The notes below the pieces were generated by a model. The model was not told the origin of the DNA, did no database searches, and worked only from the letters and a program-made list of their open reading frames with translations. Made by a program: the position numbers and the translations under genes. Positions 402-25,011 of a stretch of DNA of 64,000 nt are shown here, piece after piece. Each line of letters begins with the position of its first letter. Within the stretch, counting starts at the first letter, position 1. The stretch lies in NCBI RefSeq assembly GCF_037042905.1, contig NC_087259.1, forward strand, positions 30,566,001 through 30,630,000. The letters are read 5' to 3'. The stretch comes from Lytechinus pictus (Eukaryota).

Positions 402-1436
402 CAGTGGTGTAACTACGGGGGGGGGGGGCATTGGGGCACGTGCCCTCCCAATCGGCTGACCAAAAAAAAAAACGGGGAAAAGGAGAAAAGAGGGAGAAAG
501 GAAAAGAAGCGTATAGTGGGAAAGAAGAAAATATTATTCATTATAATGTAATATTATAATTATGTTATGTTGCATTACATAAGAATTTTTTTTATCATAA
601 CTTCATGAAACATAATTTGCCCAGGGCCTACGTCTTCATTGTTCCTGGTGCTTGTATTGTCTGCTAACGAGATATATAATCCTGTTGTCTTATATATGAA
701 ACATTTCCTGTCCGTGATTACGTTCGCATTAGTGATTGGTGAAATATGTCTGCTCTTCATGAATTCCTAAAATCAGCCCTTAAAATGTCCCTTCTGATCT
801 GAATATCAAAAATTTTCAGCTCGCGCTTCGCGCTCGCATCATTTGGATATTGAATTACGGATGGTCCTAGTTAATTCCTACAAAGAAACCTTAGAATGCC
901 CCACTTCAGGTCTGAATTATCTAAATTTTCAGCTCGCGCTTTGCGCTCGCAATATTTGATTAGTGAGATGCGTATGATAATCATGATTGCAATTACTACA
1001 AAAAGTGTTTCATGTGTTCAGATGTAATTCTTATAAACCAGCAAGCGCTTGGCACTCGCATTAGATGACTATGGTGAGATATGCATACTCTTAATGGATT
1101 CCTAAAATATATTCCTCAAAATCTCGCTGTTTGGGGTAAAAATATACGAAAACTTCAGCTCGCGCTTCGCGCTCGTATTGATTAGCGAGACAGGTACCTA
1201 TCATGATTACACAAATTTGATTATAATGTCTCTTTTTAGGTGTGAATATAAAAAAAATTCAGCTCGCGCTTCGCGCTCACATTATTTGATCAGTGAGATG
1301 CATATCCGTTTAATGACATTGTCCAGAAAATGTCTCTATTAGGTCAGTATAACTGGCAACTGAGCGCGCTCACTCAGTGATTCAAACATTTTGCTGGTGC
1401 CCCCTCCCCAATGCCGTGACCCACGGTACGCCACTG
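402..1436. mobile_element. Non-autonomous hAT-like DNA transposon nested in an older repeat
   Basis: Ends CAGTGGTGTA.../...TACGCCACTG; identical 8-bp flanks TGGACATA at 394-401 and 1437-1444; internal recurring motif TTCAGCTCGCGCTTCGCGCTC. Confidence 0.85.
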
Positions 1437-3574: not shown

Positions 3575-3604
3575 CTTATGGCCCGAATTCACAAAGGTGG
3601 ATTC

Positions 3605-3792
3605 TACAAAATCCACAGATTTTAGAATCCGCGGATTTTTGAGTCCATGGATTCTGGAAAATCCGCGGATTCTGCAGTTTGTGATTCACCAACGGTGGAC
3701 TCAAAAATCCGCGGATTCCACCAGACCCACGGTTGAGTCCATGGATTCAACCGTGGACTCAACAAAATCCATGGATTCAACCATGGATTTTC
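3605..3792. repeat. Left subterminal array of palindromic motifs (AATCCRYGGATT variants), putative Myb-protein binding sites
   Basis: About 9 copies such as AATCCGCGGATT, AGTCCATGGATT and AATCCATGGATT directly inside the left TIR. Confidence 0.8.
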
Positions 3793-4100
3793 AATCAAAT
3801 CTAGGGATTTCCCCTTTTTTGAGACTGCACTGAGCATGCTCAGTGTCATAAAAGAATAAACATCTGCAGCATATACACAATAAACTAAAAATATATTATT
3901 TCAAAATACATGTTTGCTGGTACAGACCCCCCCCCCCCCCCCATCTCCCAAGAATTCTGTTTGCTGGCATTGGTTGTTGTGTATCATTACACACACACAC
4001 ACACACACACACTGTACACACACAAAATAGAACACATCATCAGCTGGCTGCACTTAATCAACAACCATCATCATCATCATCTGTTAAAGTACAGTCCACA

Positions 4101-7100
4101 ATGGCCTTGAAGTGGCAGAAGGCGGAAATTAATTATTTAATTGAATTAATCGCTGACAGACAACAAAAGATTTGTAATAGAGAAACGCATCACAAGGCCA
4201 ATGAGGCGAAGACTGCCGCGTGGAATGAGGTGGAGGAGCAGTTCTGTGCTCGATTCGGGAGGCGGTGGCCCCTCCACAAAATGAAGGAGCTGTGGAAGCG
4301 CCAAAGAGGGTATGCTAAGAAAGAGTTTAGCAACTTCAAAGCTAAATTGAGGCAGACTGGTGGCGGTCCTCCACCATCCCCACTGTCTGCATCAACCATC
4401 CTAATCAAAGAATTGCTGCCAGGGGATTTTGTGCAACTGCAAAATCCCTTCGACGATGACGTTGTTCTGGCAAACGAGCAGGCGATGACAGCTCTGGACT
4501 TTATTCGAGGGGTTCACAAGTAAGTCCAAAACAGTAACGAAAATTGATTAGAAATGCATTTAATTTTATGATTGTAAACATACTCATGCTGATAAAGTAT
4601 GTAAGATCATTATATTGACCCCTCCCATGCATTACTAATTAATTTCCTTTGAAAAAATAGGATTATATCTCACTTATCCTCATTTAAAAACTTGTCAATT
4701 CTTTTTAATATCGATAATACATTTCAATGTCGTCTGCGCCGCCATCGCACCGCAAAAAGTATTTTTGTAGTCCCATTCGTTCATTTGCGCGTAGTTCAAA
4801 ACCATAGTTTGGCCAAACTCCACAGATTTCAATGTGTGTAGGTCTATCGTCAGATTTAATGTGAAACCGAACGATAAACGAACTCAAGCTAGTCACGTCT
4901 ATCGATGTTAAGAGGTCTATATAGTTCAACCTTCTTTAAATTAACTTTTTATGTGGCTAAATGCAAAACTTACCTCAAATAATCCCTTTATCGGTGCCTA
5001 TATTGATGAAAATTTCCACATTTTGCCGAGCTAACTCCAATTCGTACTCCGTACTCCAACTTTAGTTTAAACTTTTAGATCAGCTGTGCAGTCATGTGAC
5101 TGATTTATGAGACGCCGTTTTTCCACAATTTTATCTTAATTATGAAATGTCTTTTATCATATCAGTTGTAAGGCCCATCCCATGACATTTTTCTCAAAAC
5201 TTTACTGGTCAGCTCGTCTCGTTCTCACTCCATTTTTATGTCTTTTTTAATCCTCAGTTGTGGTAAGATTCTTCTAATTAAATTAGTTTAGCTCACAAAT
5301 TCCAAGCCGTAGGCCTACCGAAAAAGGGCTACTAATTTAGAAACGATGATAAAACAACACAGAGATATATTTCAATTTACAAATCGTTTTGGGTGATTTC
5401 ATTTTTGTTTTTTAAAGGGTTTGTGTAATATGCCTTTAAATATGTTCTAGATATTTTAGCAACTAATTGTCCCTTCTGGGTCCAGACTAATTCAGCTAAC
5501 TAAAAATTAAACAAACATCTCGATTCACTTAATAAATCTTATGATTGCCCGCACAGGACATTTTCAGATATTAGATGAATGAAGCAGGGGCCGCGGAAGC
5601 GGGATATATCCAAAACTGTGTCTAAAAACATTTTTAAATAAATGTAAACAAATTTCCAGATGATTGTGATTTTTGTCTGGTCAGACGTCCCCGGCCACCT
5701 CCCCCCCCCCCTCCCCCATATATAAAGAGAGCCAAAAAAAAAACCTACTCATACTTTTGGAATATTGAGAGGCATTTATTATCCAATACCCCCACCCCCA
5801 TAAAAAATAAACCTTTTTTACAAAATATCGACAGGGCCTATGAATATAAAAAAAGTCTTTAATTAAGAAAGGTATTTTTTAAGAAAATATATTTTTAAAA
5901 ACAAAGAATTTCATTGCTACCAAAATGGTGGAATGTAACCCACAATGGACCTGAACAGGGGCGGATCCAGGATTTCCCCATAGGGGAAGTTTTTAACCAA
6001 AATTTAAGGGAATTAATTCGTCCACGAAAAAAAGTCATAAGCATATTAAGCAAAAATAAAAATTAACAAAAAATTAAGGGTATTTTGTCCACGAAATAAA
6101 TTGACAAGCCGAAGAAAGGGGGTTTTAACCAATAATTAGGGGTACTTCGTCCACAAAAAAATATTGACAAGCAAAAAAAAAAGGTCTTCCCTTTTAAAAT
6201 GGGGAGGGGCACACTTTTGTTTAAACGGAATTTTTACATTATAAATTTTAATTGTGCATATCTCAACAGGGAGGGGACGGCACAGGCCGGCTGTGTCCCC
6301 CTGGATCCGCCAGTCGACCTGAAATTAACTTTCTAAGCAAAATAAAAATAAAAAGAGATTAAGGTCATTAAAAAAAATCCAGTTCAATGTATCTTTATAA
6401 GTTCAATATGTAAAATTTTCTTTGCAGATCATCTTCAACAATCCATACACATGGTTCAGCCGCCCAACATGCCCAAAGAGATCCGAAGAGTAGCACTGAA
6501 GCGTCAAGGTAATTATTCCGTTATTGAAAAGAAAAATATGTAGACCTGAACAAAATTTAAGAGTATTAATTCGTCCACGAAAAAAGTGATAAGCAAAACA
6601 AAAAAAAATTCCAAAATATGTTTGTATACGAAAAAAAATTGACAACCAAAAAAGGGGGTTTTAACCAAATATTAGGGGTACTTCGTCCACAAAAAATATT
6701 GACAAGCAAAAAAAAACGTCTTTACTTTTAAAATGGGGAGGGGCACACTTTTGTTTAAACGGAATTTTTACATTATAAATTTTAATTGTGCATCTCAACA
6801 GGGAGGGGACGGCACAGGCCGGCTGTGTCCCCCTGGATCCGCCAGTGGACCTGAAATTAACTTTCTAAGCAAAATAAAAATAAAAAGAGATAAAGGTCAT
6901 TTAAAAAAATCCAGTTCAATGTATCTTTATAAGTTCAATATGTAAAATTTTCTTTGCAGATCATCTTCAACAATCCATACACATGGTTCAGCCGCCCAAC
7001 ATGCCCAAAGAGATCCGAAGAGTAGCACTGAAGCGTCAAGGTAATTATTCCGTTATTGAAAAGAAAAATATATAGACCTGAACAAAATTTAAGAGTATTA

Positions 7101-10100
7101 ATTCGTCCACGAAAAAAGTGATAAGCAAAAAAAAAAAAAATTCCAAAATATGTTTGTATACGAAAAAAAATTGACAACCAAAAAAGGGGGTTTTAACCAA
7201 ATATTAGGGGTACTTCGTCCACAAAAAATATTGACAAGCAAAAAAAAAACGTCTTCACTTTTAAAATGGGGAGGGGCACACTTTTGTTTAAACGGAATTT
7301 TTACATTATAAATTTTAATTGTGCATCTCAACAGGGAGGGGACGGCACAGGCCGGCTGTGTCCCCCTGGATCCGCCAGTCGACCTGAAATTAACTTTCTA
7401 AGCAAAATAAAAATAAAAAGAGATTAAGGTCATTAAAAAAAATCCAGTTCAATGTATCTTTATAAGTTCAATATGTAAAATTTTCTTTGCAGATCATCTT
7501 CAACAATCCATACACATGGTTCAGCCGCCCAACATGCCCAAAGAGATCCGAAGAGTAGCACTGAAGCGTCAAGGTAATTATTCCGTTATTGAAAAGAAAA
7601 ATATGTAGACCTGAACTTATATTTTCCAATGCATTAGCCAAAGAATCGAACATATTGTTTTACTTAAATCTTTTTTGGGGGGGATGGGGTTAAATGGCTA
7701 TGCGCTTTTTTTTTTAAATATAATTTTTTATGTATTGCCTAAGCATGATCGAACTGATACTGAACTAATGAAACAATAAATATTTAGGCTATTCTTAAGT
7801 GTTTCCTTTGTCAGTGTTGAAATATGACAAATATTTTCATGCACTTCAGTCATCAAATATTCAACTGATGTTCATTTCTACTCTAGTTCAATTTAATTGT
7901 TTCCCTTTTATTACAGCAGTCAATCCAACATTCTGGCTTCTTCGTTGTTAGCAACATCATCATCTTTCGCAGTAAGGTAATTATTACCAACATTCTCCAT
8001 TAAGTGTTCATTCAAATTATCATGATTCGTATGCAGTAGAAAATCATTATTGTCATATCCCTCTTATTAATATTATCATCATGGTCGTTGTTATTATTAT
8101 CATCACCATCACGGTTATCGTTATTATTATCATCATCATCATTATTGTCACTATTATTATCATCACCATCATCATCATATTATTATTATTATTACTATTA
8201 TTAATATTCCTACAGCAAGAAACTGATCCACAATGTGCCGCACTCAACCCAGGTGAGGTAAATGGGTACCGGTAGGAAGTAATTCCTTAAAAAGCTGTGT
8301 GCGCTATGAACGCCTAGCTTAGCCGGGTAATTATAGGAGCGCCTTGAGCACCTAACAAGGTGGATATGTGGGCAATATAAATACCCTATATTATTATTAT
8401 TATCGTCATTATGACCTTACACATGCCTATTTTACATATTTATCTACATTTCTAGAATAGGTATCCACATGGAAAATTACAAATCGCACTGCTAGAAAAC
8501 ATGTATCGCATAGGTACAGGTATTATGGTATTGCATTTATGACCTTAACAAGAGTAGTGGTCTATACTGATTGACTTGGGACAGGAGGCTTTATCCCACA
8601 GTAATTAAGTTAACTTTGGTGTCCCAATGAAACGGTTGATATTTGTATTATCTATTCTAAAATGTATTTATGTATTATTTGCCGAATAAATAGTAATAAT
8701 AATAATAATAACAAATTTAATAACATGAATTATCTTTACAGACCCATTTCCGGAGTTGAGACACCCCAGTGCCATACACCTGTTTCCAACACGGCCTCTA
8801 TCCCTATTGACCTGACAAGTGACATTGACGCTTCAAGGTATGAAACGTTTAAATTTAGATCATGGTCACATGACAAAGTTGACAAAATTGAATCCATGTT
8901 TTATTAATACCGTACGCAATCATCATTCTCTGAATACCATGGCGGCACCGTGGTGGGGGGGGGGCGCATTTCCCCACCCCCCCCCCCACATCCACCTAAA
9001 ATTTTGTAAACCGAAAAACCAAAAACGTGTATTAAATGTTGTTTCTGTCCGCTTCTGCATGCTCCACCCAAAATGTTCTTGGCCTGACCTATGTATTATG
9101 TATTGGTATATCTTGTTTCTTCATTACAGCAACCATCCTTCCAGCAGTTCTCGACCATATGCATCATCTTCATTTCTCTCTTGTCCTAGGTAAATACCAC
9201 ATAAAATATTATAATTGTTTCAATTATCTGTATTTATTCATGAATGTAATTATTCAATATATATAATTGTGTTTTTCCCCAGGGATTGCTTAGATTGTTT
9301 ATTCCCCATGCTCCGGCCTCCATTTCGAAACAAACAAACAATTGATATCTATGATTTTTATATGGAGTCTAAAATTTTTTGAAACGCGCTCATTTGCCAG
9401 GTATACTGAGAAAAGGGGACATTTTAAGGACTGATTTTAGGAATTCATTAAGAGCAGACATATCTCACTAATCCACTAATGCGAACGTAAGCATGGACGG
9501 GAAATGATTTACATTAATACCTTAAAATGGGGCAATCACTTTAAGTAGTCATGAAAAAGAAGCATATGTCACAAAAGAAAACAATAACTCGCCACTGGAT
9601 GTCATATTATACTTTGCTTCGTTACAGATCAGCATCATTGTCAAAAGAAGTCGTTAATGAATGTGATAAGCCAGGAGACGAAACAGATGACTTCCCCAAA
9701 ACAAGGTATTAAATTGCAAATATTATCAACCTAATTTGTTGATAAAGCATGCATATTTTTGTCATTTCTATCTTTGGTGGGCTACTTTGACCATCAATAG
9801 GAGAGATGAAACTTAAACTGGTAATAAACAGGAATGATAATTGGTAGAATGGAGGTTATTTCAGAGAAGTATTTCTGTGGTCATTTATCATTGAAACATA
9901 GGCCTATATATAAATGAAGATAAGATAATTAAAATTAAGAGTGGAAAGAAGTATCATTTGCCATTTGCAATGTCATTCATAAGGACAAAGGAACTTCTTA
10001 TATAAATGTATTATCAACATGTTCAAATTTCTTTTGAGGGTAACCATCCTTTTGCTTCTCTTCTACAGCAATCAGTCTTCAAGCGTTGGAAGACCATTCG

Positions 10101-11134
10101 CACCGTCCCTTTCCTCTACATGGTAATTATTGCTCATGTTTCTACTTTGCAAAGGTTGCCATTAAATATCAATCCATGTTTTAAACTTCCAAAGAAAAAT
10201 CAGGCAAAGCAATGAAATCAAGTGGATAAAAGTTCTCTGTATTACAGCGCAATGTAAAGTTGTCCATCACAATACATATATATTTTTTTAAGATTAAAAT
10301 GTAGAATGATTTAGAATTTTGAAAATTATGCTTTATTCATGTCCTTTTTGCCAACCTACTCTTATAATTCTATTATCTCTGAATATTTCAAATAATTTTG
10401 AATTTGGGGGGGGGGGGGGGCAGTCTGCCCCCTGACGAGCCACAACCCATGCAAAGGACGTATCCCTGCCCCCCCCCCCCCCTGATGAGCTTGAAAGACC
10501 TTATTTGCCCCCCCCCCCCTGACGAGCTTGAAAGACCATGATCACTCTTATCAATGGAAATAATACCTGAAATAATTCAAAGCAAAATCAATTCAATTTG
10601 ATAACAGACAACAATTTAATATATTATTTTGTCACATTTTCCACCCATTAATAACCACAATTTACATTATTATTTAACTATGATTAAATAGATTATGACT
10701 GTTAAAACTATTTTTCTGCAAGTCAAGTGATATGCATGTAAAAACTAATTTGTTGAAATTCAAATACATCATACTATCATGGAATACCATTAAATCTTAA
10801 TTAAATAAATTTTTTATTTTGGTCAATAATTTTTAACAGCAATGCATCACCTCGAAAGAGGAACTTGGAAAATCGTCGCCAAGGCACCAAGAGAGCTCGT
10901 GTGACAACAGAGGAAGCCATTCTAGAGCTGGACAAAAAAGAGCACGAGCTCAGAATGAGGCTTATGCTCAAAGAGCACGAAATCAAAATGAAGTTGATCA
11001 ACGCTGAATATGAAAATAAAATGAAAATTGCCAATGCTGAACATGCCATCAAGATGGACATTTTTTCTTTACAGAAATGTACTGAAGCAGCAAAGAACAG
11101 AGAAGCCCTTGGCTACCCTAATTCCGAGGATTAA
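4101..11134 (+). CDS. Harbinger Myb/SANT-like DNA-binding protein (MSANTD/NAIF1-like), multi-exon, ~434-448 aa
   Basis: Exon 1 4101-4519 encodes a trihelix Myb/SANT domain (KWQKAE..LIELI..AWNEV..F..KELWKR..TGGGPPP). GT-AG phase-2 exons follow at 6428-6508, 6960-7040, 7493-7573, 7917-7976, (8216-8257 optional), 8742-8837, 9130-9189, 9628-9705 and 10069-10122. Terminal exon 10840-11134 encodes a basic patch plus coiled coil (EHELRMRLMLKEHEIKMK). All join in frame with no stops. Confidence 0.85.
5956..6315. mobile_element. hAT-like MITE in intron 1 of the Myb gene
   Basis: CAGGGGCGGATCCAGG ... CCTGGATCCGCCAGTC with 8-bp flanks GACCTGAA at 5948-5955 and 6316-6323. Confidence 0.75.
5998..7616 (+). 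repeat. Tandem triplication, ~532-bp unit, each containing an 81-nt coding exon
   Basis: Near-identical units with exon starts at 6428, 6960 and 7493 (periods 532 and 533). Confidence 0.95.
8216..8402 (+). mobile_element. 5'-truncated SINE body and tail
   Basis: GCACTCAACCCAGGTGAGGTAAATGGGTACC core and GAGCGCCTTGAGCACC...ATAAATACCCTA(TAT)n tail, typical of marine-invertebrate SINEs. Confidence 0.6.
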
Positions 11135-12741
11135 GAATTGAAATCATCAATTATGGTCTATCCATGCATGTACACATATTCTGTTAATAATTGAATTTAA
11201 TTAAAATTATAATATCCAATAATATATATTATATAAACAGTACTGCAGATTATATCAAATACTTATAGCTAAAGAAATTACAGAAGTTCTTGATTTGCTG
11301 ATGTGGTTGGGAGAATTCATTTGAATATTTATATCATAAAAACTGTATATAGACATTATCTATTCATAAATTAGGAATTATGTTGTAATGGATGACAATG
11401 TACTAGAAAGACTGAGAAAAACAAATATAGTATACAGTACCTGACTCATTATCAATATTCATGAAAACTAGGGCAATAAAGTTTAAAATGTCCAGCTCAG
11501 ATGTCAGATATGGGTAATTATATTTCATATTTATGTTATTAATGTACATATATTCTTCACTCTCTATGATGATTAAGTATTTATTGAATATTGATATATG
11601 ACTTCGGCATTATCAATTGAAAAATACACGAAGAGCATGACAGTAAGAAAGTGAGTATTTATTTTTTAAAGTAAACCTAGTTAGAAGGATCTGGTCTTTG
11701 TCTGAATGATTTTCACACTTCTCTAACTTAAAGAAATACAATGGAATTATAAGATTTTGTATATATGTTCATATATCAAACACAAGTATCGAAAGACTCA
11801 CTTAAAACCAGTCTTCTTAATATCTAAGAATTGGACCACGACAATGTCAGTTGTTGGGATGTTAGACGTAGAAATATAAGATATCAATAAATAAACGCTA
11901 TGTTTCTTGAAAAATGAATATATGCTGTGATATATTCAATAAAAATGTATATAAATCACAGTAATATTTACACCATGTGCCATTAGAATTATAATGTTCA
12001 TTGAAATAAAACACATGTGATATGTTTCTTTCAATTCATATTCCAATGCCTTACATGTATATATCCGACAATGGAAAGGCCATCAATTCAATTTGATGAG
12101 AGAAGTAAATGAATGGATAGTTTGCAAATAAACTGCATTTCCTGAAATTGCAATCACTCAATTTAATATTGTTCTGTATCATTCTTTCATTGTATGGCAA
12201 CAATAACATACACATTGCACAATATTTATCCATTCATTAACTGTAGGCCCAGTAGATGCATTATCAGAGATTATTGTTGTTGACAGAAAAAAGAAATCAT
12301 TGGAAACCAACTTCTGCAATTGGGGCATAAAAAGAGTTGACATTATTTCTAAATACAAAACAAGAACAGTATTGCCTGCAGCAGAGTCTCAAAGAGTGCT
12401 GTAATTTCACAGGACACTTCTTACCAGCATTCACAATTAATCTGTTTCATAATGCAATAAGTGATTTATTCTCTTGAAATGATATAAAGAATTGTCTCAA
12501 TTTTCTCATCAATAACATATAAAGTGGCATTTCACATATATAATACCAGGAAGTGATTTTTTTTAGTCCTTTTTTTTATAGAGTCTGCAGCAAAAAGATT
12601 CACACGGCAAAAAACACATTCATCAATAAAAGATGAGTACTTTCTGAATTAATGAAAATGGGAATGTGGGATCATGAAGCTTACAAATTTTCCAGTTAAT
12701 ACCACAATTTACAGAATGATTCTTTTTATCAAAAATATTTT

Positions 12742-13390
12742 AAGACAGAAATTAGAATCCATTTGAATTGTACGGGATGAAGCAATTGACTTCATCAACA
12801 TGCTTGTTGAAATGAGAAGGAACACAGTGAACAATAATAAAAAACAAGGTAAACAGGAGTAAATTACAAAGAGGTACTTGCAATGGAGACATGGCATTAA
12901 CGTTCCAATCATTTGTTGTTAAGAGTCATCAGGGATGGTTCAAGCGATACTGCAGGCCAAAAATAATTATATTTAAAGAAATAAGAGTAAAAATTAACAG
13001 AGCAAAACTCTGAAAGTTTTATCAAAATCTGATAAAACAAAATAAGTTATTGAATTTTAAAGTTTGACAACATTTTGCAAAAACGTTTAAAATGTCATAA
13101 CTTTATTTGTTGTCCAAATTTAATGAAATTTCCAGTGTTTTGTTTGTCTGATTTTACTTTATCTGTTCAAATCATACTGTTTTCAGCCTGGAGTATCCCT
13201 TTTAATCCCAACACAAGAAGGAAGATCGAATCCAGAAGTTTTCCAACATTGAGTGAAGAAGTTGAAGCTACTTAACAAAGAATTCTAAGAGTAATGCAGG
13301 TAACCTGATGTGCTGGGTGCATCGATGGAAACTGTTTACATTAGGAGTGAGTGATGGGAAACCATTCCAATCAAGTGTAATAGTTGATTG
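12742..13390 (+). pseudogene. Decayed inverted copy of Harbinger transposase coding exons 2-3, interrupted by a MITE remnant (~12955-13205)
   Basis: AAGACAGAAATTAGAATCCATTTGAATTGTACGGGATGAAGC, TTCCAATCATTTGTTGTTAAGAGTCATCAGGGATG and AGAAGGAAGATCGAATCC...GAAGAAGTTGAAGCTAC...GGTGCATCGATGG...TACATTAGGAGT align to the reverse complement of 17391-17610 and 16337-16623, with stops and indels. Confidence 0.8.
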
Positions 13391-14170
13391 CAAAAAAGAG
13401 TTTCATGCAGCTAACCTTACATCCTTAGTTACATTCACTGGTAGTACAAATATTTTTTTTAAGTAATTAACCATCCTGACTACACTCAACAATAACTCCA
13501 AAATAAAGATTTTCTGAATATTTTTCTATAACTTGTCACATCCCAAATTGAGAAATAATTTCAATTGAATGAAAATTTTAACTTGTGTAAAATAATTTTA
13601 AAACAGCACAAGAATATGTAAATTTTGCCATAGAGTAACTGATATAATAGAACTGTGACAGCTTGCATGAAATGCTATTGAATAGAAAATCAATAATTCT
13701 CTAATAATGTTGTAATTCTTAAGTGGCTAGTAATGACAGTAGTAGCTTTTACTAGGACGTAATGGCAGAGGTATAAAATATTACAGAATGTATATGATCT
13801 TTTAAAACATAAATTTCAGCTGCGGTTATGATGTCAAGATGGTTCAAAAAGAATTCAATAAAATGACAACCGAGGATTTGTAAACTGGCCATCTTCATTG
13901 TATTATATTTCATCTGAGATTTAATTTAGGGTATTATTATCTTGTTAGGTGCTCTCTATTACCCCGGTTAGGCTCGGCTGCTGATTCTGATGCTCACAGC
14001 TTTTTCATGTATTTAAGAACATAATTAAAAATATAAATGTAGTTGCATAAAACTCTTGTTTGCTGGAATGATAACAAGTACCTTGACAGCATCAGCATTC
14101 ACAGATTTTCTCTGAAGTGACTGAAAAAACAGCAAGGGCTTGAGCAGATTGTTCTGAGTGGTTACCTGGA

Positions 14171-17100
14171 TTAGCGGGTGAAGTGATCCTCAATGATCTG
14201 TTCTCTCCTGAGCCTACCAGCGACTGCATCGCGGTGGCCAGGAGGAAGGTGATCCAGTGGCATATCATTATCAGGCTCAGGTCCTTGAAATTCTTCCTCG
14301 CGCCACTCCAAAGATATATTCCAAAGGACCGAGCATGCCACTATAACTATGAATGCAGTGTCCACCTTCACACGCAAATCATTGAGGCAAGGGAATCTCC
14401 TCTTCCAACGGCCAAAGGTGCGCTCAATAACACAGCGGCCTCTCTTGTGGGCATGATTGTAGCGCATCTCTGGCCGTTGGAGAGGGTTTTGGAGGGGAGT
14501 CATCAAAAAGGGGAGGCACGCGTACCTGCAAAATAATGAGAAAGAAACAAAATAATAAGTGAACATAGATAATATTGAACAAAACTTGCCAAATAAAAAT
14601 GCAAAGGACTTCTGTAAGTATTCTGTTGCATTTTCAAGATGACAAAAAGACCTAAAATAAATATTCAAAAAACCCCATAATATCCAAAGTATATAAAATG
14701 TCAATGAATTTGTTTATAATTATCATGGTTAAGGTTTGATTATCTTGAAACATGTTCTGTAAATCAAAGTTACATGTTATTTTCGTTAATTTTGTGTGTG
14801 GTCTATATCCATTTTGAAACTGAAATGCATATTTCTTCTTCCTTTCATCACCCTTAGTTTTAGTTTACTATTTGAAAAATCATGGGGAGGAGCAGCCACT
14901 CCACCACCCCTCCCCCTAGCTATGTAGCAGTTATAATTCATGAAATTTAAAAATTACTTTGACATACAAATATATAAGGCCACGCATCTTGAACTCACCC
15001 CATTTGTGTTATGTCACAATTGAATAGTGCACCTATCGGTAATCAAATGGTCATAACTTAAATAAAAATTATCCTATCCTTACAAAACTATATTTTTTCA
15101 GAAGAAAATTTCATGAGGATTCCATAAATGGCATTAAGTGAAGTAGAAAAATTGCTAACATATTATGAGTGAAAATCTTTGACATTTTACAACCCCCAAT
15201 ATACTTTATTTCAAACATCCATAATTTTTTCCTCTTTGCCCATATCATTAATTACTTAACATTTTTGTATTGCTTATTATTTACATGATATATAACTTCA
15301 AGGGATTCATTCATTTCATACAGATCATATTGATATGTAAATTTTGAATATCCAATACTGACATTTCTTTTCTGTCATTGCTTTACTTTCTAAAAAAATC
15401 ATAATAAATGAAGGACTCTGTGATGTGTACAGAGGTGTATTTTTATGCCCATTATATCAAAGGACAAGTCCATCCCAACAAAAATTTGATTTGACTAAAA
15501 AGAGAAAAATCCATTAAGCATGACACTGAAAATTTCATCCAAATTGTTAGAAGCAGTATTTTATATTTCATGCATTGTTTTACGGGAAGCAAGTGAAGGT
15601 TTTTTTAAGTACATGTAGTTGGTTACATTTTTTTTTTAATCGACATACCCACTATCTCCAAGCAACAACCCAGAACCATCTGCTCTTGCCTCTAGCTGCA
15701 ATTTCAGTGCACTCTCATTGAAAATCCGTGAATCATGAGTGCTGCCAGGCCACCTTGCCACGATACTTGTTATCTTTCCAGCATTATCACAAACAACCTA
15801 ATCATGGTACACAGAGAAACATCAATAGGAGAAAGAAAAAAACACATGATAAATTGAATTCGTTCATCATCTTCTTTTCATCTTCTTAACACCTTCTTCA
15901 TCATCTTTTCATATTAATATATATGCTAACTTCTTAAAATAAAACAAATCAATTAAAGGGGAAAAACATTTTATGAGAAACATATAAATGAAAATCAATA
16001 TCAAAGTATATCAAAAGTACCTGAAAATAAATTCTTAGACTGTAGCATCTAATTAATATCTAAATAAATAAATTTCTAATGAAAATGCTCAAGAGCATAT
16101 TTAAAGGAAAAATAAGAAAAATACAGTACATTACAAAGAGAGGGTGCTAAATAAAACAATCTAAATTTCAATGTTTAAAAAAGAAATCAATGACCGCTAT
16201 TATACTTTAGTGACATTGGAATTATGATAGGAGTACAAGTCACATTATCGACCCTTTACCAAAACTTCAGACTGGCATAACAGAGTATACGTTTATGAAG
16301 ATAAGTACCGGTAATATATTAAAAATGCAATCTAACCTGCACATTGATGGAATACCTGTTCTTCCGGTTAAGAAAGTACAGGGCTTGTTCCCCACCAGGA
16401 CTCCTAATGTATACATGAGTCCCATCGATGGCACCTATGACGCCAGGAAACCCGCAGTACTCGTAGAATCTCTGCTGGGTAGATTCAACCTCTTCTCTCA
16501 TAGTTGGAAATCTTATGAATTCTCTCTTCCTTCTTGCAATAGCCTCAGAAACATCTCTGATGACTCTGCAAACAGATGATTGGGACATTGATGCTTCGTC
16601 CCCATGCATCCTCTGGAATGAACCTGAATTAGAAAAAGAAATTCTAATGTATAAAATTTGAACTGGATAATTTTCCTAATAAAACCAAAACAATTATAAA
16701 TAGAACATAGATAAAGAAAATAACAAATGAATATTGAAAAATATAATGGGATGAAACATATTGAGCGTAGTGAAACATGGTGTTTGGTGTTAGAAAAATC
16801 AATACGCAAATGCATTTGTTACACCGATCCTTGTAATGACAATGATTACTTGAATTATGGTCAAACATCCAGAAATTCAATTTTTTTTTTCGTTTCAAGA
16901 GGGGGGGGGGGGGGACAGAATATTACATATTTAGTTTGATGTTGTTGATTAAAGGTTTTTAGACAATTCTGATATCAGTGTTAACTAGGGTTCTGTCTAC
17001 ATTAGCTAATCAATATTATTATAAATGGATTACTTTGCACAAAAACTTTTACACCAGTTACTAGTAATGTAATGAGTTGCTTTAATGTAACCTAAATTCA

Positions 17101-18142
17101 TGCACTGGTGTACAGATGAAAGGGGGATCTTGGGGGGGCTATGCCACTTCTCTCTCTCTCTCTCTCTTGTTGACATTTATAAATTTAAGTAATGTCATGG
17201 AAAGTTGTGTGGATGTATAATGAAAATAACAATGACATCTTTTGTGGTTTATTAAACAAATTATTTTCACCAGCATTGAGTCATAGACTAGTGCAATAAT
17301 CAGAGACTGATGAATGCAATATATACATGTATGATATACCCCTCAAGCGCATCCAATATCATACATATTTGGTGGATAATATGAACTCACCAACTGCATA
17401 AAATCGCAAAGTTGTCAGAACCTGCAAAAAAACAGGTAGTGGTTCATTACGTTCTGTATTCCTCCTCAGATCACCCTCAAGCATGTTGATGAGATGGAGC
17501 GCAGTCTCTTTTGACAAGCGATACCGCATTCGAAAGGCTTCATCCACGTACAACTCAAAAGGATTCATTCTGTCTTGTAATCCCCTTTGAGGTCTGGGCC
17601 TATTGGCTATCTGTGTGTACATGGAAAAATTATTTAGAGTAAACATGAAAAAAGTGGTAATTCAAGATTCCCTGAACAATAGGCAAGGTTTGTAAACATT
17701 TAGCCACCCCCCCCCTCCTAGTCTTCTTAGGTATCATATGGAAATAGCCATGTCTATTTAGGATTAAGTTTGTTTTTCTTTTCCTAATTTTTTTACTAAT
17801 ACATACATTGCAATTTGCATACATCAAGTCACGTTTCAAGTAATCTGGTGCTTTAATTGCCGTACTTTCGTTCATTTTGGCTCAATCCATTTTTTATACC
17901 TTGGAGGAAAATTGTCACTGCTTGTGCAAGTAGGAACGAATATTTGCCATGTTGGTTTCATCACTAGTGCTTCAACAAATATCTCCTCCACATTTAGAAA
18001 CAATTTTGACAGTTATAAAAAAAGGAAATATTTTGTGATAAGCACTGCATCAGTATGTTTTTCAATAGAAACAAAAGCTTACCTCTCTGACCCTGTCGAC
18101 GCGATCAAGGTGCATCAAATGAGCACGGTGATTTTCTGCCAT
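14171..18142 (-). CDS. Harbinger DDE transposase (HARBI1-like, DDE_Tnp_4), 356 aa, intact
   Basis: Coding exons (minus strand) 18142-18083, 17610-17391, 16623-16337, 15797-15649 and 14525-14171; GT-AG, phases 0/1/0/2 compatible, 1071 nt in total. Motifs LRFYAVG, SQSSVCR, GAIDGTHV, SINVQVVCD, WPGSTHDSRIF, LLGDSGY and VIERTFGRWKRRFPCL are present. Confidence 0.93.
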
Positions 18143-19475
18143 ACCAGTATTTGTTCTGCATAGAAAATGAAAATGACAGAGGGTAAAGTTTCAATGGCAA
18201 AGAAAATACATATTAGATGAGCATGAGACTAGAATGAGGTTCAGTATTTATCTATTAACTCATTGAGATAACAGTTTGCCAAACTTCTCTCAAATCTGTA
18301 TTCTGAAAATTGTCTTACTCATTTTACTGTATCTCTGTAAGGACGTCCCCTATTTTATCTCTGAAAAGGCCCATTTTTTTTCCTTTGCTAAAAATACATG
18401 TGACTGCTCTCCCAAATTTAATTTCTTATGCTTCTGATTTCTATGATGTGCAATCAATGATAAAATTCAATCCTACAGATCAATCACAAGTTATTGGGAC
18501 AAGGACGAGTGTTACCTTCAATGGGAGAATGATATCAACAGCGTACTCCACCCGTTCTGAGAAACTATTCGCTGGCAAGTAACAGTATTACTCTGGCTGG
18601 TGGTAGACTGGTAGCTCTAATAACGTCACTGTGATCACACTGGCTAGAGACTGTACAGAATGATACATATTGACAATAGGCAATCAAATCATAGCTAAAG
18701 AAATACATAGGTCTATCTATAGTCTGCATGTCAGATCGATTCTTTCATGAACCAACATAAACAAATATGTTAATTTCAGACCCAATGTCAATTTTAGACT
18801 CAACAAATATGTCATTCACGATAAATAATATTGGAAAAGGGGGTTGACATTGGCGTGGAAAACTAGAAATTCAAGAAAAATAGAGGAAATGTATTTAAAG
18901 AAAATTCATCATACATACATGTTAGCAATCAACACTCTGTTTGGTTTGCTGAGCATTTACGTGATTTAGAATTTGCACATACCGGTAATTCTAGACTAGA
19001 CCCCCCCCCCCCAAAAAAAAACTTATGCACAAATACAAATAAAAAACAACATCTTATACAGGTCTCAGCACAGCCTTCCGAGAAAAAACTCCCTACTTAC
19101 CCCCCCCCCCCCCTCATACCCTCTCCATAAACACAGACTGCCATCATAAGCCATTGCATACATGTACATGTAGATCTGTTTATCCATACTTCTTTCTTAA
19201 TTAGGATAAAATGATTTTATGAAGTTCTAAAGAGCAATTTTGCATGTATAGACTGTAACATTTATTATTTTTAGACCACTGACCATTCGTTTACAATGTT
19301 TGTCATTTCGGCCAAGTTGTCATTGTTCCATCTCTAGCTTTGAAAAGGTGTGTGCATTGTCCTCATAAATTATCACCAAGCACTCTCTTAACATTTATTT
19401 TCATTAATGTCACAAGTTTCATAATCACAGACAATTAGCAAATTAAAAAAAAATATTCAGTTCCATATAGTCCAG

Positions 19476-20296
19476 GGGCGGTATTTTGAGGTCATTTTAT
19501 CTTTAAAATATTTTATTTTATCTCTTAAAATGAAATTGGTATTCTGAGATGACATTTTATCTCTCAGTTAAAATTTGAAATTTTATCTTGCGAATAATTT
19601 TATCTTGCGTATCTATGACGATACGCAATACAGAGCAGTGGCTGCGTAGACATACCCATCACGTATCTGGGTATTGCAACGCGCATGATGTGCTTGCGCC
19701 CAAGTTACTTTGAAAAAAAAAAAAAAAACTTAAAAGAGGGTAGGGGCTATTTTATCTCCGCGACGTTGATTTCACCAATATTTCTAGGTGAATTAACCCC
19801 AAATATTGACGCGAAAATGAAGAAAAATTAAATATTTATTGAGAATACCAGCTTAACGTTATTCCTGTACAATCAGAAAGTATTTCATAAGGCTTGTCTT
19901 GACTAATATTGTCTTTGAAATGATGCTTGAAAAGATGGGATATAGACTTCGAAAAAAGATGAGAGTATTGTCCTTTTTGTCAAAAAGAAATCTCTATAAA
20001 GACGCGTAAGCGTATAGTGTAAGCGTATTTGAAGTCAATAAATTGACGCAATCTCACTCCTTTGCCACACCTCCTCGCGGAATGGATTTCAATTGGTTGA
20101 GTGACACAAGAGAGCTATAAAAGCGCGTTTCTAATTGGATATTGATTAAAAAGTAGGTGTTTCTTATAAAATGAAGATAAAATTGTACTCAGAAAACCAA
20201 TTTTGAGAGATTTTAAGGGTATTTTATCTCACTGATTTTAACGGAGATAAAATATTTTATTTTATCTGAGATAAAATGGATCTCAGAATACCACCC
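19476..20296. mobile_element. Non-autonomous Harbinger-type MITE nested in the transposase 5'UTR intron
   Basis: TIRs GGGCGGTATTTTGAG / CTCAGAATACCACCC; CAG duplicated at 19473-19475 and 20297-20299; subterminal TTTTATCT repeats. Confidence 0.8.
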
Positions 20297-20377
20297 CAGA
20301 TCTAGATCTCTAGACTAAGGAATTATATTTTTTAAGTCACAGGCATATTTTTGGTGAGGACCTCTATTAAGTGGAAA

Positions 20378-21166
20378 GTTGGCGAAGAACAATAGGAAAC
20401 AAGATGGCGGCGTAAACATCGGGCAAGTCTCTTCCGTCTTTTCATAATATTTTTCTCATTTTTTAAAATGAATTCTTGTTTTAAAAAAAATCGATGGCGT
20501 AGAAATGTCGGAAATGAAGTTGTATCCCATGTACATGATTTAGGGCTAGATCTTTTAGAAGGAAATTAGAAATCTCGGGGGCGAAAGTTTCAGGTTTTTT
20601 GGCGGTACACACAGATGAATGGGAAGGAATACCTATTACCTGGCTTCATTGAGAGTAAGCACACATCAGCCGCCTGGCTAGTACAGGGGACTCAACAGCC
20701 ATATGTTTATGTATTTAACTTAAGTTGTTGTTGTTGTTAAGTTCGGATAAAACCGTGAAGTGAAGTCGCACGACAGCCGAAGACGAAGTAAGTCACTGTT
20801 TTTCCCCCTTTCTTTCAACTTTCAAGTTTATTTTCCCCGTGTTGATGCAAACCGTGCATGAAATTCAGGCCAAAACGGAATAATCTTTTATAATAGTATT
20901 AGTTAGGCCTAGGCCTAACTTTTTAGTAGGCCTAGCCCTAGGCCTATGACATGTTATAATTTATATTTTTATGAAATAAAAAAAAATTAAAGACAAAGAT
21001 CGGTGAGCACGTCGGGGAGATTTTTCATTGTCAATCCCCAGTATGGTGGCTGCACAATAATGAACCGTCTGTGTACGAGGAAACATTAAAAAAAAGAATT
21101 TAAAATGTTAAAAAAATCCTCGAAACAGACATGACTGACACTGACAGACGGCTGACAGCTGTCTAG
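20378..21166 (+). repeat. Dispersed repeat shared with 37463-38157 plus 39187-39194; carries a YY1-type motif and a splice donor
   Basis: AAACAAGATGGCGGCGTAAACATCGGGCAAGTCTCTTCCGTCTTTTCA ... CCTCGAAACAGAC ... CTGTCTAG is collinear in both places. Confidence 0.85.
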
Positions 21167-21661
21167 ATTATTTAGAGTAGGCCTAGGCCTAGACTGATTT
21201 TTATTCTCCAGGATCAGGAGCCTAAGTTCAGGCTAGAGTAGGATAGACCATGTAGATCTAAGAAAATCCAGCGACAGGGTCAGGAGGAATCAGAAATTTC
21301 GGAAGAACTGAGAGAAAAAGGGAACAAGTCAAGGGTCTAATCGTCTGACGGCCGACGGGTCCGTAACGGAACTCTAGCAGGTTCCGGGACAGCCCGACCA
21401 CCGGGGTCGGGCTGTCCGGTGGTCGGGCTGTCCGGACCCCCTCTAGCAGTGTCACAGAGCTCGCGAAAGACCAACACAGAAATGCACTTATGGGGCTACG
21501 CAAAACCATTTCCGCAGGAGAATTATTCACTCACTCGACTCTCATGACCGCACCTAAGATACATGCATTTTATGACATAAATTCGTACATTACTTCACAA
21601 ATCAATGCATAAAAAGTTACGAAAAATATTGCTCATCAAAACAAAATGTCAAATTACTCAC

Positions 21662-21805
21662 AATTTTCTCGGAGCTCGGTCCAGCAAGTATTTTATATCA
21701 CGGTGCTTTCACGTCCAGTGTTCCACTTTTTTAGCTGCAAAATTGCCGCCCAGCGATCGTCTGCATAAAATGTACCCAAATGCTGCGCTGTGATTGGCCA
21801 ATTAC
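21662..21805 (-). promoter_or_regulatory. Putative transposase promoter and non-coding first exon
   Basis: Minus-strand donor GTGAGTAA at 21661-21654; double CCAAT box GATTGGCCAAT at 21792-21802 just inside the right subterminal repeats; the ATG exon has its acceptor at 18157-18156, so an upstream exon is needed. Confidence 0.45.
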
Positions 21806-21811
21806 GCCTAA

Positions 21812-21990
21812 AATCCACGGATTCTGTGGAGTCCACTGTTCAGACCACCCCAAACAGTTGACTCGAAATCGTGACGTAATAGGCTTGGTCGAATCCGTGG
21901 ATTCGGTCGAGTCCACCTTTGTGAATCACAAAAGCGAATCAGTGGACTGTGGATCTTGCAAAATCCGTGGATTCGTCCGTGGATTTTGCA
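21812..21990. repeat. Right subterminal array of AATCCRYGGATT-type palindromes
   Basis: AATCCACGGATT, AATCCGTGGATT (twice), AATCAGTGGACT and GTCCGTGGATT inside the right TIR. Confidence 0.8.
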
Positions 21991-22315
21991 GAATCCACCT
22001 TTGTGAATTCGGGCCATTGTATTTGCTTTGTTGACAAACGAATCAAGGGATCTGCATGAGATTGGTCTGGTAAGAAACCTTCCATTTTTTACATTTTTAT
22101 CAACCAATTTTTTAAACCTTCATACGCATTAGGCGTAGGAAGGAAGGTGTAAAAATAAATAACATCACCACCATTTACGTGATTTTTACTTTAAAAGATG
22201 GATTTCTATCTTTGTTTTGGTCAGTCTCTTATGCGTCTATGAAAAGAGTGTCAAGACTCCATGATGAAGAAGTATGTCAAAATATTTAAAAAAACATCAT
22301 AGAGTCCTCAAGACT

Positions 22316-22385: not shown

Positions 22386-23496
22386 CAGGGAGCTCCCTGG
22401 GTTAGCGTCATTGTAGTTTCGCACCTGTATTAATTAGAAATGTTAGATTTAATCCGTCTAATTTGCATATTAATAAGCCATAAATATTTTGGGCTTATCC
22501 TGAAATAAGTCACCTCTCTTCTTGTGTGTGTCAGTGTATGTGCGCTCGTTGTGTACAAAGTCAATGGGAGAGGAAAGAAGTCACCGCCGCTGACGAAATG
22601 AACGGCAGTGAATGAAGTGATGACTTAAACCAGGATAATGCCAATATTTTTGTCAGGCCAGCCAGCGCTGGGTGGTCTTATTTGCCCCACCGCAATGAGG
22701 CAAATGAGGCCGCCTGACCCTTTTTTTAATGAAATTATGTTGTTGTACTATTCAAAATTAAAATTAGTTCAGTTGGTTTGACTTTGATACAAATACAATC
22801 ACTTTACTAAAACACCCCCATTTGAGGATTAATTTATTAATCCTATCTAATATTATGAAGAAAAAACTTTGGATTGTGTTTTCTACTGTCACAGAACTAG
22901 TAATGTGTTTCTATGAATGTGTTTTATTGGTAGTGGACGCATACTCAAATGTGGTGATGTCTACACTGCATTTAGATGTAACCATAGTCCATAGAATTTT
23001 AATTATGTATTCATCTGGGTGGCCTCATTTGCCCTGTCGGACATCTTTAGTTCACAGGCATCGTGTCAGAAAAAAAAAAGGGAAAGTGGTGAAATTTACT
23101 ACAGTTCTGGCATGCTCAATAATACCTTAAGAAAGTAAACTAAGATAAAAGTTAATACACATTACTGGGTAGTTTACTTGCATCTCAGTCTAAAGTGGCA
23201 ATGCTACTTTCAAAATTTTGATTTTGAGGTGCTGCTGCGTTTTTGCTCCCTCTGGCCATGTGCACTTGGCTGTGAGACATTATCTATGCTCAAACAGTAA
23301 TCCATTTTACCATACCATTCTTGAGCAGTGAGCTAAAAACTAATAGGTGGCCTTATTTACCCCACCCTCCCCTATAGTCTGCCAAGTTGAAACAATTTTT
23401 TATGTATTTTCTCTTTATGTTTTGCAGGTCATGAAGCTATGAAGATAGGTTTGTGAATGAATGAGATGCTGAGTGAATACTGACTCAAGAATCAAG

Positions 23497-25011
23497 ATGG
23501 CTAACTCTTTCTCCATCCTGTTGTCATACATTGACAACCTTCTATGGGGTTGCACACAAATATTCTATGGGATTGTGTTCATCATCAATTTCAACTACCA
23601 GCTTGTGACGAGTCTATATAGATGCATCATTCAACTATGGGCACTGTTAATACAAACTGTGCTGTATACTGCCAAAGCTTTTGTGTTCAGCATTGAGTTC
23701 CTTGCCGAGTTACCGGTCTGGAGTTACCACATGGGAAAGTACCTGATTGATCTAGTCCAGAACCTGATGAGCAATGCAATTCAAGGTTGTATGTCATGGT
23801 CCTGGGAAGCTCTTGTGTACACTGGGGAGTTGCTGGGAAACATCGTTAAGAATCTACTGTTAGCATTCATGAGTGTTTGGACTCAGTTTTTAAATCTAGT
23901 CGTCTTCCAGTTTACCCTGTTTGCTGAACTTTTCACTTCACTGATTGGATCTACCTACAGTCATATGAAAGAAGCTAAAGGAAACACTGTACAGCTCATG
24001 CACAGTGTTGGAAGTGATACCAGAGAATTTGTGCACGGTGTCTGCAGCCTAATCTATGAGTTCTTCATCACTGGAGTAGCCTACCCTATTTCATTTGTAA
24101 ATGCTTGCACCCAAAATATGATTGATGGACTGTATATCTTTATGAGCATGTTGAAGGCTATAGAAGATTTTGTTATTGGAATTTTTGAAGTAGTGATCGA
24201 GTTATTGTATTCAAGCATCAGCATCATTATGAATGTTTTTTATGATATCGTGAACGCTTTCAAAGAAATATCCACATTCTTTATCAATGCGATAGACTAT
24301 GTTGGCCAAGCTTTGATTGACTGTTTTGATAGTGCTGCGGAAGGATACTCGTCACTTAATTTGTTTGTTGGAAAGAATTGGGGCGCCCTCTTGGCTCTAG
24401 CTCTCTGTGTAACCCTGGTGTGGGTTACTATCAATATGAACGGACAACACGAGAGAAATATCCAACACATCATCCAGGATCTCACTCGGCTAGTGAATAA
24501 CTTCACAACTTCTAGATCACGCAATGTCAACAGAGAACCCTTGAGACCTGAAGGTCATCTTCACCAGGATGTCCTTCCTGAAGATCAGCAGCAAGGTGAC
24601 CTTGATGTTCTTAATGAAGGAGAAGAGAATGGAGATGATGGCATGGACCAGGATGTACCAGCAGGTGAAGTAGGAGGTGTAGGAGACCAGCCTGGTCCAA
24701 GCCGATCGACCCACCACACACCATACTCATTTCGATCACGACCATTCACACCGTCAGGTGAGCCCGCTGAAGGAAGTGGCTCGGTTGAATATCTTGTGAG
24801 TAAACTTAAGAACAGATTAAGCGAGGAACAGGAAAGACAAGCATGTGTGGTATGTCTGGATGCAGTAAAGAATACACTCTTCATGCCATGTCGTCACCTG
24901 TGTGTCTGCGTACCCTGTGCAGACAGGATAGTCAGTAATGATGACATATATATGCGGATCTGTCCTCTATGTAGATCTAGGATTGGATCGATTGTTGAGG
25001 TTTATAGTTGA
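23497..25011 (+). CDS. RNF26: Multi-pass membrane C3HC4-type RING E3 ubiquitin ligase, RNF26-like, 504 aa, single main coding exon
   Basis: Long hydrophobic N-terminal half, acidic/disordered linker, and C-terminal RING CVVC..PCRHLCVCVPCA..CPLCR ending IVEVYS; ATG in AAGATGG context; this architecture matches RNF26. Confidence 0.8.
   Translation: MANSFSILLSYIDNLLWGCTQIFYGIVFIINFNYQLVTSLYRCIIQLWALLIQTVLYTAKAFVFSIEFLAELPVWSYHMGKYLIDLVQNLMSNAIQGCMSWSWEALVYTGELLGNIVKNLLLAFMSVWTQFLNLVVFQFTLFAELFTSLIGSTYSHMKEAKGNTVQLMHSVGSDTREFVHGVCSLIYEFFITGVAYPISFVNACTQNMIDGLYIFMSMLKAIEDFVIGIFEVVIELLYSSISIIMNVFYDIVNAFKEISTFFINAIDYVGQALIDCFDSAAEGYSSLNLFVGKNWGALLALALCVTLVWVTINMNGQHERNIQHIIQDLTRLVNNFTTSRSRNVNREPLRPEGHLHQDVLPEDQQQGDLDVLNEGEENGDDGMDQDVPAGEVGGVGDQPGPSRSTHHTPYSFRSRPFTPSGEPAEGSGSVEYLVSKLKNRLSEEQERQACVVCLDAVKNTLFMPCRHLCVCVPCADRIVSNDDIYMRICPLCRSRIGSIVEVYS

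Follow-up and report, generated by a model that had tools for sequence, protein, structure and literature searches.

Phase-2 mini-exons, and their probable growth by single-exon tandem duplication, in the linker of a Harbinger Myb-like gene of Lytechinus pictus

The 64,000-nucleotide stretch of Lytechinus pictus DNA analysed here (NC_087259.1, positions 30,566,001 to 30,630,000, forward strand; "the window") contains, at 3580-22015, an element which by its sequence is an autonomous-looking PIF/Harbinger DNA transposon of 18.4 kb on chromosome CM073240.1. It carries two convergent genes, one for a DDE_Tnp_4 transposase and the other, LOC129278086, annotated in RefSeq as an uncharacterised protein, for a Myb-like protein whose DNA-binding domain and C-terminal helix are joined by a linker encoded in eight mini-exons. 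This linker was probably, and we say so with good confidence, enlarged mainly by tandem duplication of single exons within an ancestral phase-2 interval. The features on which the argument depends are as follows.

3580..3604, + strand: left terminal inverted repeat, with a 25-bp perfect core and an imperfect likeness to the right end up to about 3720.
3627..3776, no strand: four palindromic ATCCRYGGAT subterminal motifs at the left end (motif search).
4101..4519, + strand: exon 1, Myb/SANT trihelix DNA-binding domain, phase-2 end (PF13873, AlphaFold, RefSeq).
5998..7624, + strand: tandem triplication of a 532-533-bp unit (intron plus 81-nt exon), junction GACCTGAAC/AAAATTTAAG.
6428..6508, + strand: 81-nt mini-exon, copy 1, phase 2-2 (exact RefSeq match).
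6960..7040, + strand: 81-nt mini-exon, copy 2, phase 2-2, identical to copy 1 (RefSeq).
7493..7573, + strand: 81-nt mini-exon, copy 3, phase 2-2, identical to copy 1 (RefSeq).
7917..7976, + strand: 60-nt mini-exon, phase 2-2; a NAGNAG acceptor at 7920 gives a 57-nt form in isoform X2.
8742..8837, + strand: 96-nt mini-exon, phase 2-2 (RefSeq).
9130..9189, + strand: 60-nt mini-exon, phase 2-2, an old paralogue of the 54-nt exon; the motif N-x-x-S-S-x-x-R-P-[YF]-A is common to both.
9628..9705, + strand: 78-nt acidic mini-exon, phase 2-2 (RefSeq).
10069..10122, + strand: 54-nt mini-exon, phase 2-2, conserved in a sister subfamily and tandemly amplified there to 5-6 copies.
10840..11135, + strand: last exon, a basic stretch followed by a long helix, with the stop codon at 11133-11135 (RefSeq).
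14171..18115, - strand: DDE_Tnp_4 transposase gene of several exons, convergent with the Myb-like gene (Pfam and RefSeq).
21813-21972: three ATCCRYGGAT motifs at the right end (motif search).
21991..22015, - strand: right terminal inverted repeat, an exact inverted match to 3580-3604.

The two ends match over 25 of 25 positions in inverted orientation, and these are the sole two occurrences of the repeat within the window; an alignment of the element ends extends the likeness imperfectly over ~140 bp. In the element family the terminal repeat reads GGCCCGAATTCACAAAGGTGG, and the left terminus of the window element is also present in L. variegatus (region L001, CM031018.1) and in two further L. 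pictus regions, L002 (CM073233.1) and L006 (JAZDCF010000020.1). The 64-kb window contains seven matches to ATCCRYGGAT, none of them more than about 200 bp from an element end, against a chance expectation of 0.15, and by analogy these clusters are probably binding sites of the Myb-like protein. The transposase assignment comes from a match to PF13359 (DDE_Tnp_4; E = 4.8e-9) on the open reading frame of the last exon (14171-14704, - strand), and from a 347-residue RefSeq product at L005:20071-24015, which corresponds to window 14171-18115 and matches both DDE_Tnp_4 and DDE_Tnp_1; region L005 (GCA_037042905.1) is identical to the window at every base of their overlap, window 1-21134. The 3-bp sequences flanking the element are TAT and ATT in the window, AAT and AAG in L001, and AAT on both sides in L006.

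A second copy of the element, carrying the gene LOC129260079, lies in L002. It is collinear with the window element from the terminal repeat inward and differs from it by 0.9% in substitutions plus some indels, while its left flank turns unrelated to the window flank exactly at the terminal inverted repeat. We regard it as a separate insertion on the strength of this left flank, the different chromosome record and the separate RefSeq gene identifier; compared in sequence, the family is thus present as more than one insertion, which is evidence of mobility. Elements with the same termini measure 12.3 kb in L. variegatus and 12.2 kb in L006, the latter being a sister L. pictus element (LOC135157799) with a clean AAT/AAT 3-bp duplication. 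Two further observations concern L002. A solo terminal repeat in the same orientation (L002:9258-9278), 223 bp upstream of the second copy's left end, may be a remnant of a related or miniature element. At L002:14750-15205 the copy has an extra ~455 bp relative to window 9371-9373, inserted in the intron that separates the 60-nt from the 78-nt exon; part of this insertion matches a dispersed repeat also found at window 696-791.

The Myb-like gene begins with an exon that matches PF13873 (Myb_DNA-bind_5) at E = 8.4e-7 and 29.3 bits, above the curated cut-off of 21.7, and a search with the Myb/SANT-like protein returned 444 homologues at E <= 0.001. Together with the terminal inverted repeats and the second copy, the Pfam matches bear out the identification of a Harbinger Myb-like gene made in an initial annotation from the sequence alone. 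The mini-exon coordinates proposed there were likewise correct, as the ten exons joined at those positions reproduce XP_063966629.1 (isoform X1, 434 residues) exactly. That annotation had counted eight or nine mini-exons of 42-96 nt; eight were confirmed, all of phase 2-2, and the ninth, an open 42-nt candidate with AG/GT borders at 8216..8257 (+ strand), was rejected as it occurs in no RefSeq isoform. The candidate overlaps 8231-8291, which matches a dispersed repeat (L003:1960-2020, 85%).

All eight mini-exons have AG/GT borders, lengths divisible by three and phase 2-2; all eight also have good polypyrimidine/AG acceptors and GTAAK or GTAT donors and are open in the single frame required of them. 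As exon 1 comprises 419 coding bases, the first intron is of phase 2, and as every mini-exon length is a multiple of three, phase 2 is kept at each junction through to the last exon. Any mini-exon could therefore be removed without a frameshift, as had been claimed. The last exon starts with a basic stretch resembling a nuclear-localisation signal, and its helix part contains, at 10937-11002, two adjoining 33-nt repeats encoding KEHELRMRLML and KEHEIKMKLIN. A similar EEH...R/K periodicity is seen in homologues.

The eight mini-exons encode 198 residues, 27% of which are serine; serine, threonine and proline together make up 42% of this linker versus 11% of the rest of the protein. In an AlphaFold model built with 39 family members, residues 1-120 are helical with a predicted local distance difference test score (pLDDT, given as means of 10-residue blocks) of 80-98, residues 141-350 have neither helix nor strand and a pLDDT mostly below 50 (41-50), and residues 360-426 form one helix with a pLDDT of 90-96. 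The middle region is thus a predicted disordered modular linker between the trihelix domain and a coiled-coil-like C-terminal helix, and on this point composition and model agree with the earlier description of a Ser/Pro/Thr-rich, modular and disordered connection.

Comparison of the window element with the L002 copy separates the linker from the structured parts. Over the 715 nt of the Myb and helix exons there is a single change, a synonymous one, where the intron rate of 0.97% would predict about 7 (Poisson P = 0.0075); over 348 nt of mini-exons there are 6, of which 4 are non-synonymous. On these sequence counts, constraint acts on the structured domains but not on the linker sequence, which drifts almost neutrally at about the intron rate. 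Such drift would suit a tether for which the exact sequence is of little importance; by extension, the exact length is probably of little importance too. The exception is the R-P-[FYL]-A module, which has 10 of 17 residues in common with an L. variegatus exon and recurs significantly across subfamilies. An acidic exon also occupies the position of the 78-nt exon in the L. variegatus and Diadema genes, although the likeness is not significant.

The most direct evidence for growth of the linker is the triplet of 81-nt exons, which the initial annotation did not point out. The three 532-533-bp units are 98-100% identical and their 81-nt exons 100% identical, and the L002 copy has two such 533-bp units, both used in the RefSeq model there. 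As the two copies differ by only 0.9%, the gain or loss of a 533-bp unit is very recent. An intronic insert (5958-6315) lies shortly upstream of the first 81-nt exon, with inverted ends GGCGGATCCAGG and CCTGGATCCGCC, GACCTGAA on both flanks and three internal subrepeats of ~60 bp; one further match to it, a weak one at 61740-61838, was found within the window. A truncated form of the insert sits inside the duplicated unit: it is complete in unit 1, and units 2 and 3 lack its first ~50 bp. At the duplication junction stands the same 9-mer, GACCTGAAC.

Adjacent exons of the same phase in which both the exon and its flanking intron are homologous were found in the window, L001, L003 and L006. In the following we use A for the longer exons that begin with A (81, 96 and 78 nt here) and C for the shorter ones that begin with C (60, 60 and 54 nt), as in the initial annotation. 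In the L. variegatus gene the C exon stands in five intact tandem copies at intervals of 325 bp, of which the RefSeq model uses only the fifth (L001:14184-14237); the four intact 57-nt copies outside the model (L001:12887-13916) each combine a good acceptor with a GTAATT donor and stay open in phase 2-2. The sister element in L006 repeats the C exon six times at intervals of 312 bp, five tandem exons of 114-134 nt occur in a different L. pictus Harbinger family (L003), and an S. purpuratus homologue has four 27-residue repeats, evidence at the protein level only. As far as these sequences go, every visible duplicated unit contains one exon.

In the L. variegatus RefSeq gene the mini-exons measure 78, 87 and 54 nt, each of phase 2-2. 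In the Diadema homologue a phase-2 junction follows the Myb region, a single 2-2 mini-exon of 84 nt comes next, and the last exon is again of phase 2, which indicates that the phase-2 frame of the interval is old. We propose that in the ancestral gene the Myb exon was followed by a phase-2 intron and the helix exon preceded by a phase-2 acceptor; an exon gained in such an interval can survive only if it is 2-2 symmetric. The uniform phase is therefore a constraint that need not be adaptive, and is no evidence of a design for skipping. New exons would have arisen mainly by tandem duplication of a single exon together with a few hundred bases of flanking intron, by unequal crossing-over or replication slippage, a process which the three units here versus two in the second copy suggest to be ongoing. 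Of the older exons, the 60-nt exon at 9130 and the 54-nt exon would be duplicates that have diverged, and the rest would have an origin that can no longer be traced.

In characterised Harbingers a Myb-like protein recognises the ends of the element and both binds the transposase and carries it into the nucleus (PMC9392472, citing Sinzelle et al. 2008). By analogy, the ATCCRYGGAT clusters would be the targets of the trihelix domain, nuclear import would depend on the basic stretch of the last exon, and the transposase would be held by the long C-terminal helix, with the mini-exon region as a flexible connection between the DNA-binding and helix parts.

Several points weigh against growth mainly by single-exon duplication within a transposon gene: the 81-nt, 60-nt (7917) and 96-nt exons show no significant likeness to any other exon; tandem duplication of strictly single exons does not account for the 78-nt exon between the homologous C exons; exon usage is taken from the automatic gene models of NCBI; the 3-bp target-site duplication in the window is not clean (TAT versus ATT); and a mistake in the assembly of one locus might in principle produce the three-versus-two difference in units.

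The first of these points invites the explanation that the 81-nt, 60-nt (7917) and 96-nt exons came from exonisation of intronic or transposon-derived sequence, of which only open 2-2 candidates were kept. Neither the other exons nor the L. variegatus and Diadema genes contain a detectable relative of these three exons. The introns also hold 11 in-frame open AG...GT candidates, among them the 42-nt candidate, against about 2 expected, a crude count to be read as a rough indication only, as its filter missed the 81- and 96-nt exons. The overlap of the 42-nt candidate with a dispersed repeat means that raw material for exonisation exists. However, short low-complexity exons lose detectable likeness fast, so that an old duplication is possible for them too; the first mini-exon here and that in L. 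variegatus both begin ATCATCTTC and stand at the same place in the gene; and a source sequence for the three exons was not found. We regard exonisation as a possible but rather doubtful origin of these three exons.

The initial annotation had proposed instead that the array grew by repeated duplication of a two-exon A/C cassette, with combinatorial skipping that tunes the spacing between the domains. Duplication did enlarge the linker, as that proposal held, but the visible duplicated units hold single exons and not A/C pairs. The described alternation of long and short exons is not the true order, which is A A A C A C A C; an order A C A C A C is obtained once the 81-nt triplet is collapsed, and an alternation of three A and three C exons has a chance probability of about 0.1 (2 of 20 orderings). 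All exon pairs were compared as peptide and as DNA with composition-preserving shuffles; DNA tests that included splice flanks were inflated by the common splice-site consensus and were discounted. The two short exons singled out as homologous, 60 nt at 9130 and 54 nt, are indeed so (peptide shuffle p about 0.01; DNA z = 5.4), and both match the L. variegatus C exon. Overall, the significant pairs were those among these three exons and that of the two L. variegatus A exons. The A-type exons of 81, 96 and 78 nt showed no significant likeness to each other (p = 0.09-0.8, the 96-nt and 78-nt peptides aligning weakly at p = 0.09), nor did the 60-nt exon at 7917 to the other C exons in the shuffle tests, and local alignments found no likeness between the introns of the three putative cassettes (p = 0.4-0.85) or between the cassettes themselves. 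In the relatives the duplicated exons are grouped in blocks, A A followed by 5-6 C. The separation of the homologous 60-nt (9130) and 54-nt exons by an A exon is most simply explained by one two-exon duplication. Because the 78-nt exon stands between these homologous C exons, one old event of this kind (96+60 versus 78+54) is kept as possible, as a single event and not as the growth rule.

The isoforms bear on the skipping part of the cassette proposal. At LOC129278086, isoforms X1 and X2 (the latter 433 residues) differ by one serine through the NAGNAG acceptors at 7917 and 7920, where the sequence reads CAGCAG, and X3 (374 residues) is the same protein started at Met61; each of the three holds all eight mini-exons. 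No mini-exon skipping was found among the five RefSeq products of the two copies (X1-X3 of LOC129278086 and X1-X2 of LOC129260079), so that every isoform at both copies keeps every mini-exon, and no skipped form appeared in the homologue search, which would have listed them and returned only those clusters. The combinatorial isoforms that had been predicted are thus absent from these annotations. At the sister locus LOC135157799, RefSeq models with 6, 5 and 3 of the six C exons support, at annotation level and at this locus only, variable C-exon inclusion in the family, although these counts are ambiguous, as short reads across junctions of identical exons can be placed in several ways. Nor does the nearly neutral evolution of the linker, at about the intron rate and mostly by non-synonymous change, favor an adaptive tuning of spacing. 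Taken together, repeated A/C cassette duplication with combinatorial skipping seems unlikely to us.

An assembly artefact is quite unlikely to account for the three-versus-two count of the 81-nt exon unit. Near-identical 533-bp tandem units are easily miscounted, but units 2 and 3 differ at several positions and have the same 5' truncation, which fits separate units rather than a stutter, and the two loci lie on different chromosomes within one assembly. Finally, it is barely credible that the mini-exons are prediction artefacts and that 4519 is spliced straight to 10840 in the mRNA. Such a junction would keep the frame too, and exon use is read here from gene models and sequence, yet all eight exons have good splice sites and are open in the required frame. 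Moreover, L. variegatus and the sister L. pictus subfamily show significant conservation of the 54-nt exon and have exons at positions corresponding to the 78-nt one, a 2-2 mini-exon is present in Diadema, and the NCBI models of two loci are in agreement.

Beyond growth by single-exon duplication, one may ask whether the phase-2 mini-exon array is more than a passive tether, namely a motif-dosage module and an exon trap for host genes. Copies of a short conserved motif, N-Q-S...R-P-[FYL]-A, would vary in number by exon duplication or variable inclusion, from 1-2 here up to 6 in the sister subfamily. The exon-trap part derives from the annotation of LOC135157799, whose isoform X3 starts at the transposon's own Myb exon. 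Its isoforms X1 and X2 (L006:10001-25061) begin upstream, with five host exons for a mitochondrial-carrier domain that lie outside the transposon, whose left end is at 18055; these isoforms then splice into the first mini-exon of the transposon at ~20288 and continue with C exons and the helix exon. As annotated models, X1 and X2 are host-transposon chimeric transcripts. If the idea were true, motif copy number could set the recruitment strength of the Myb-like protein for the transposase or a host partner, and strong phase-2 acceptors would let upstream host genes splice in, a route to domestication of Harbinger Myb-like genes. We offer this as speculation that probably will not hold.

Described Harbingers are a few kb long and have few introns. 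The present element differs in being very large (18.4 kb here, 12.2 kb in the sister subfamily), and its Myb-like gene has 10 coding exons and an exon-modular linker of ~200 residues. In other respects it resembles them: it combines a DDE_Tnp_4 transposase with a Myb/SANT trihelix protein, as in the known PIF/Harbinger systems with a Myb-like second gene (among them Harbinger3_DR, the domesticated pair HARBI1/NAIF1 and the MSANTD genes), and it has terminal inverted repeats, subterminal motifs, a 3-bp duplication (clean in the sister element) and several near-identical copies. The layout of DNA-binding domain, linker and C-terminal interaction region also fits the role described for the Myb-like protein in PMC9392472. 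The teleost Harbinger paper PMC9179366 gave nothing on gene structure.

Among symmetric exons, the 2-2 phase class is generally the rarest. A general pattern has been described in which symmetric exons code for disordered regions, originate from internal tandem duplication and frequently undergo alternative splicing (PMC3632108, Schad, Kalmar and Tompa 2013). The present array resembles that pattern in its same-phase symmetric exons, predicted disorder, tandem units of exon plus intron and potential for frame-preserving skipping; it departs from it in lying within a mobile element, in a copy number that differs between two copies of one transposon, and in being of phase class 2-2. Isoforms X1 and X2 fit NAGNAG tandem acceptor splicing, which is the sole annotated alternative splicing in the linker of LOC129278086 and is not exon skipping.

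No new mechanism is involved, as earlier work (PMC3632108) connects symmetric exons with disorder and tandem duplication, and the exons were already in RefSeq as part of an uncharacterised protein. What is new is the example, in a very large and intron-rich Harbinger, and the difference in copy number between two young insertions. It displays a textbook growth route of disordered linkers inside a young, probably active transposon, in a clean and datable form, adds an unusually large, intron-rich Harbinger family to the record, and gives a lead on the fusion or capture of Harbinger Myb-like genes by host genes.

Some minor features of the window remain to be listed. Within the element, long poly-C/poly-G tracts occur at 10400-10540, 3927 and 8960-8990, and the last intron contains, at 10471-10537, two adjoining copies of the unit C12-TGAYGAGCTTGAAAGACC. 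Outside it, the window includes a run of 187 N at 35781-35967. Just past the right end lies a 512-residue open reading frame with a C-terminal C3HC4 RING finger (23473-25011, + strand). An 880-residue open reading frame with endonuclease and reverse-transcriptase domains (31569-34211, - strand) marks a non-long-terminal-repeat retrotransposon, and a further reverse-transcriptase fragment is found at 39464-40060 (+ strand).

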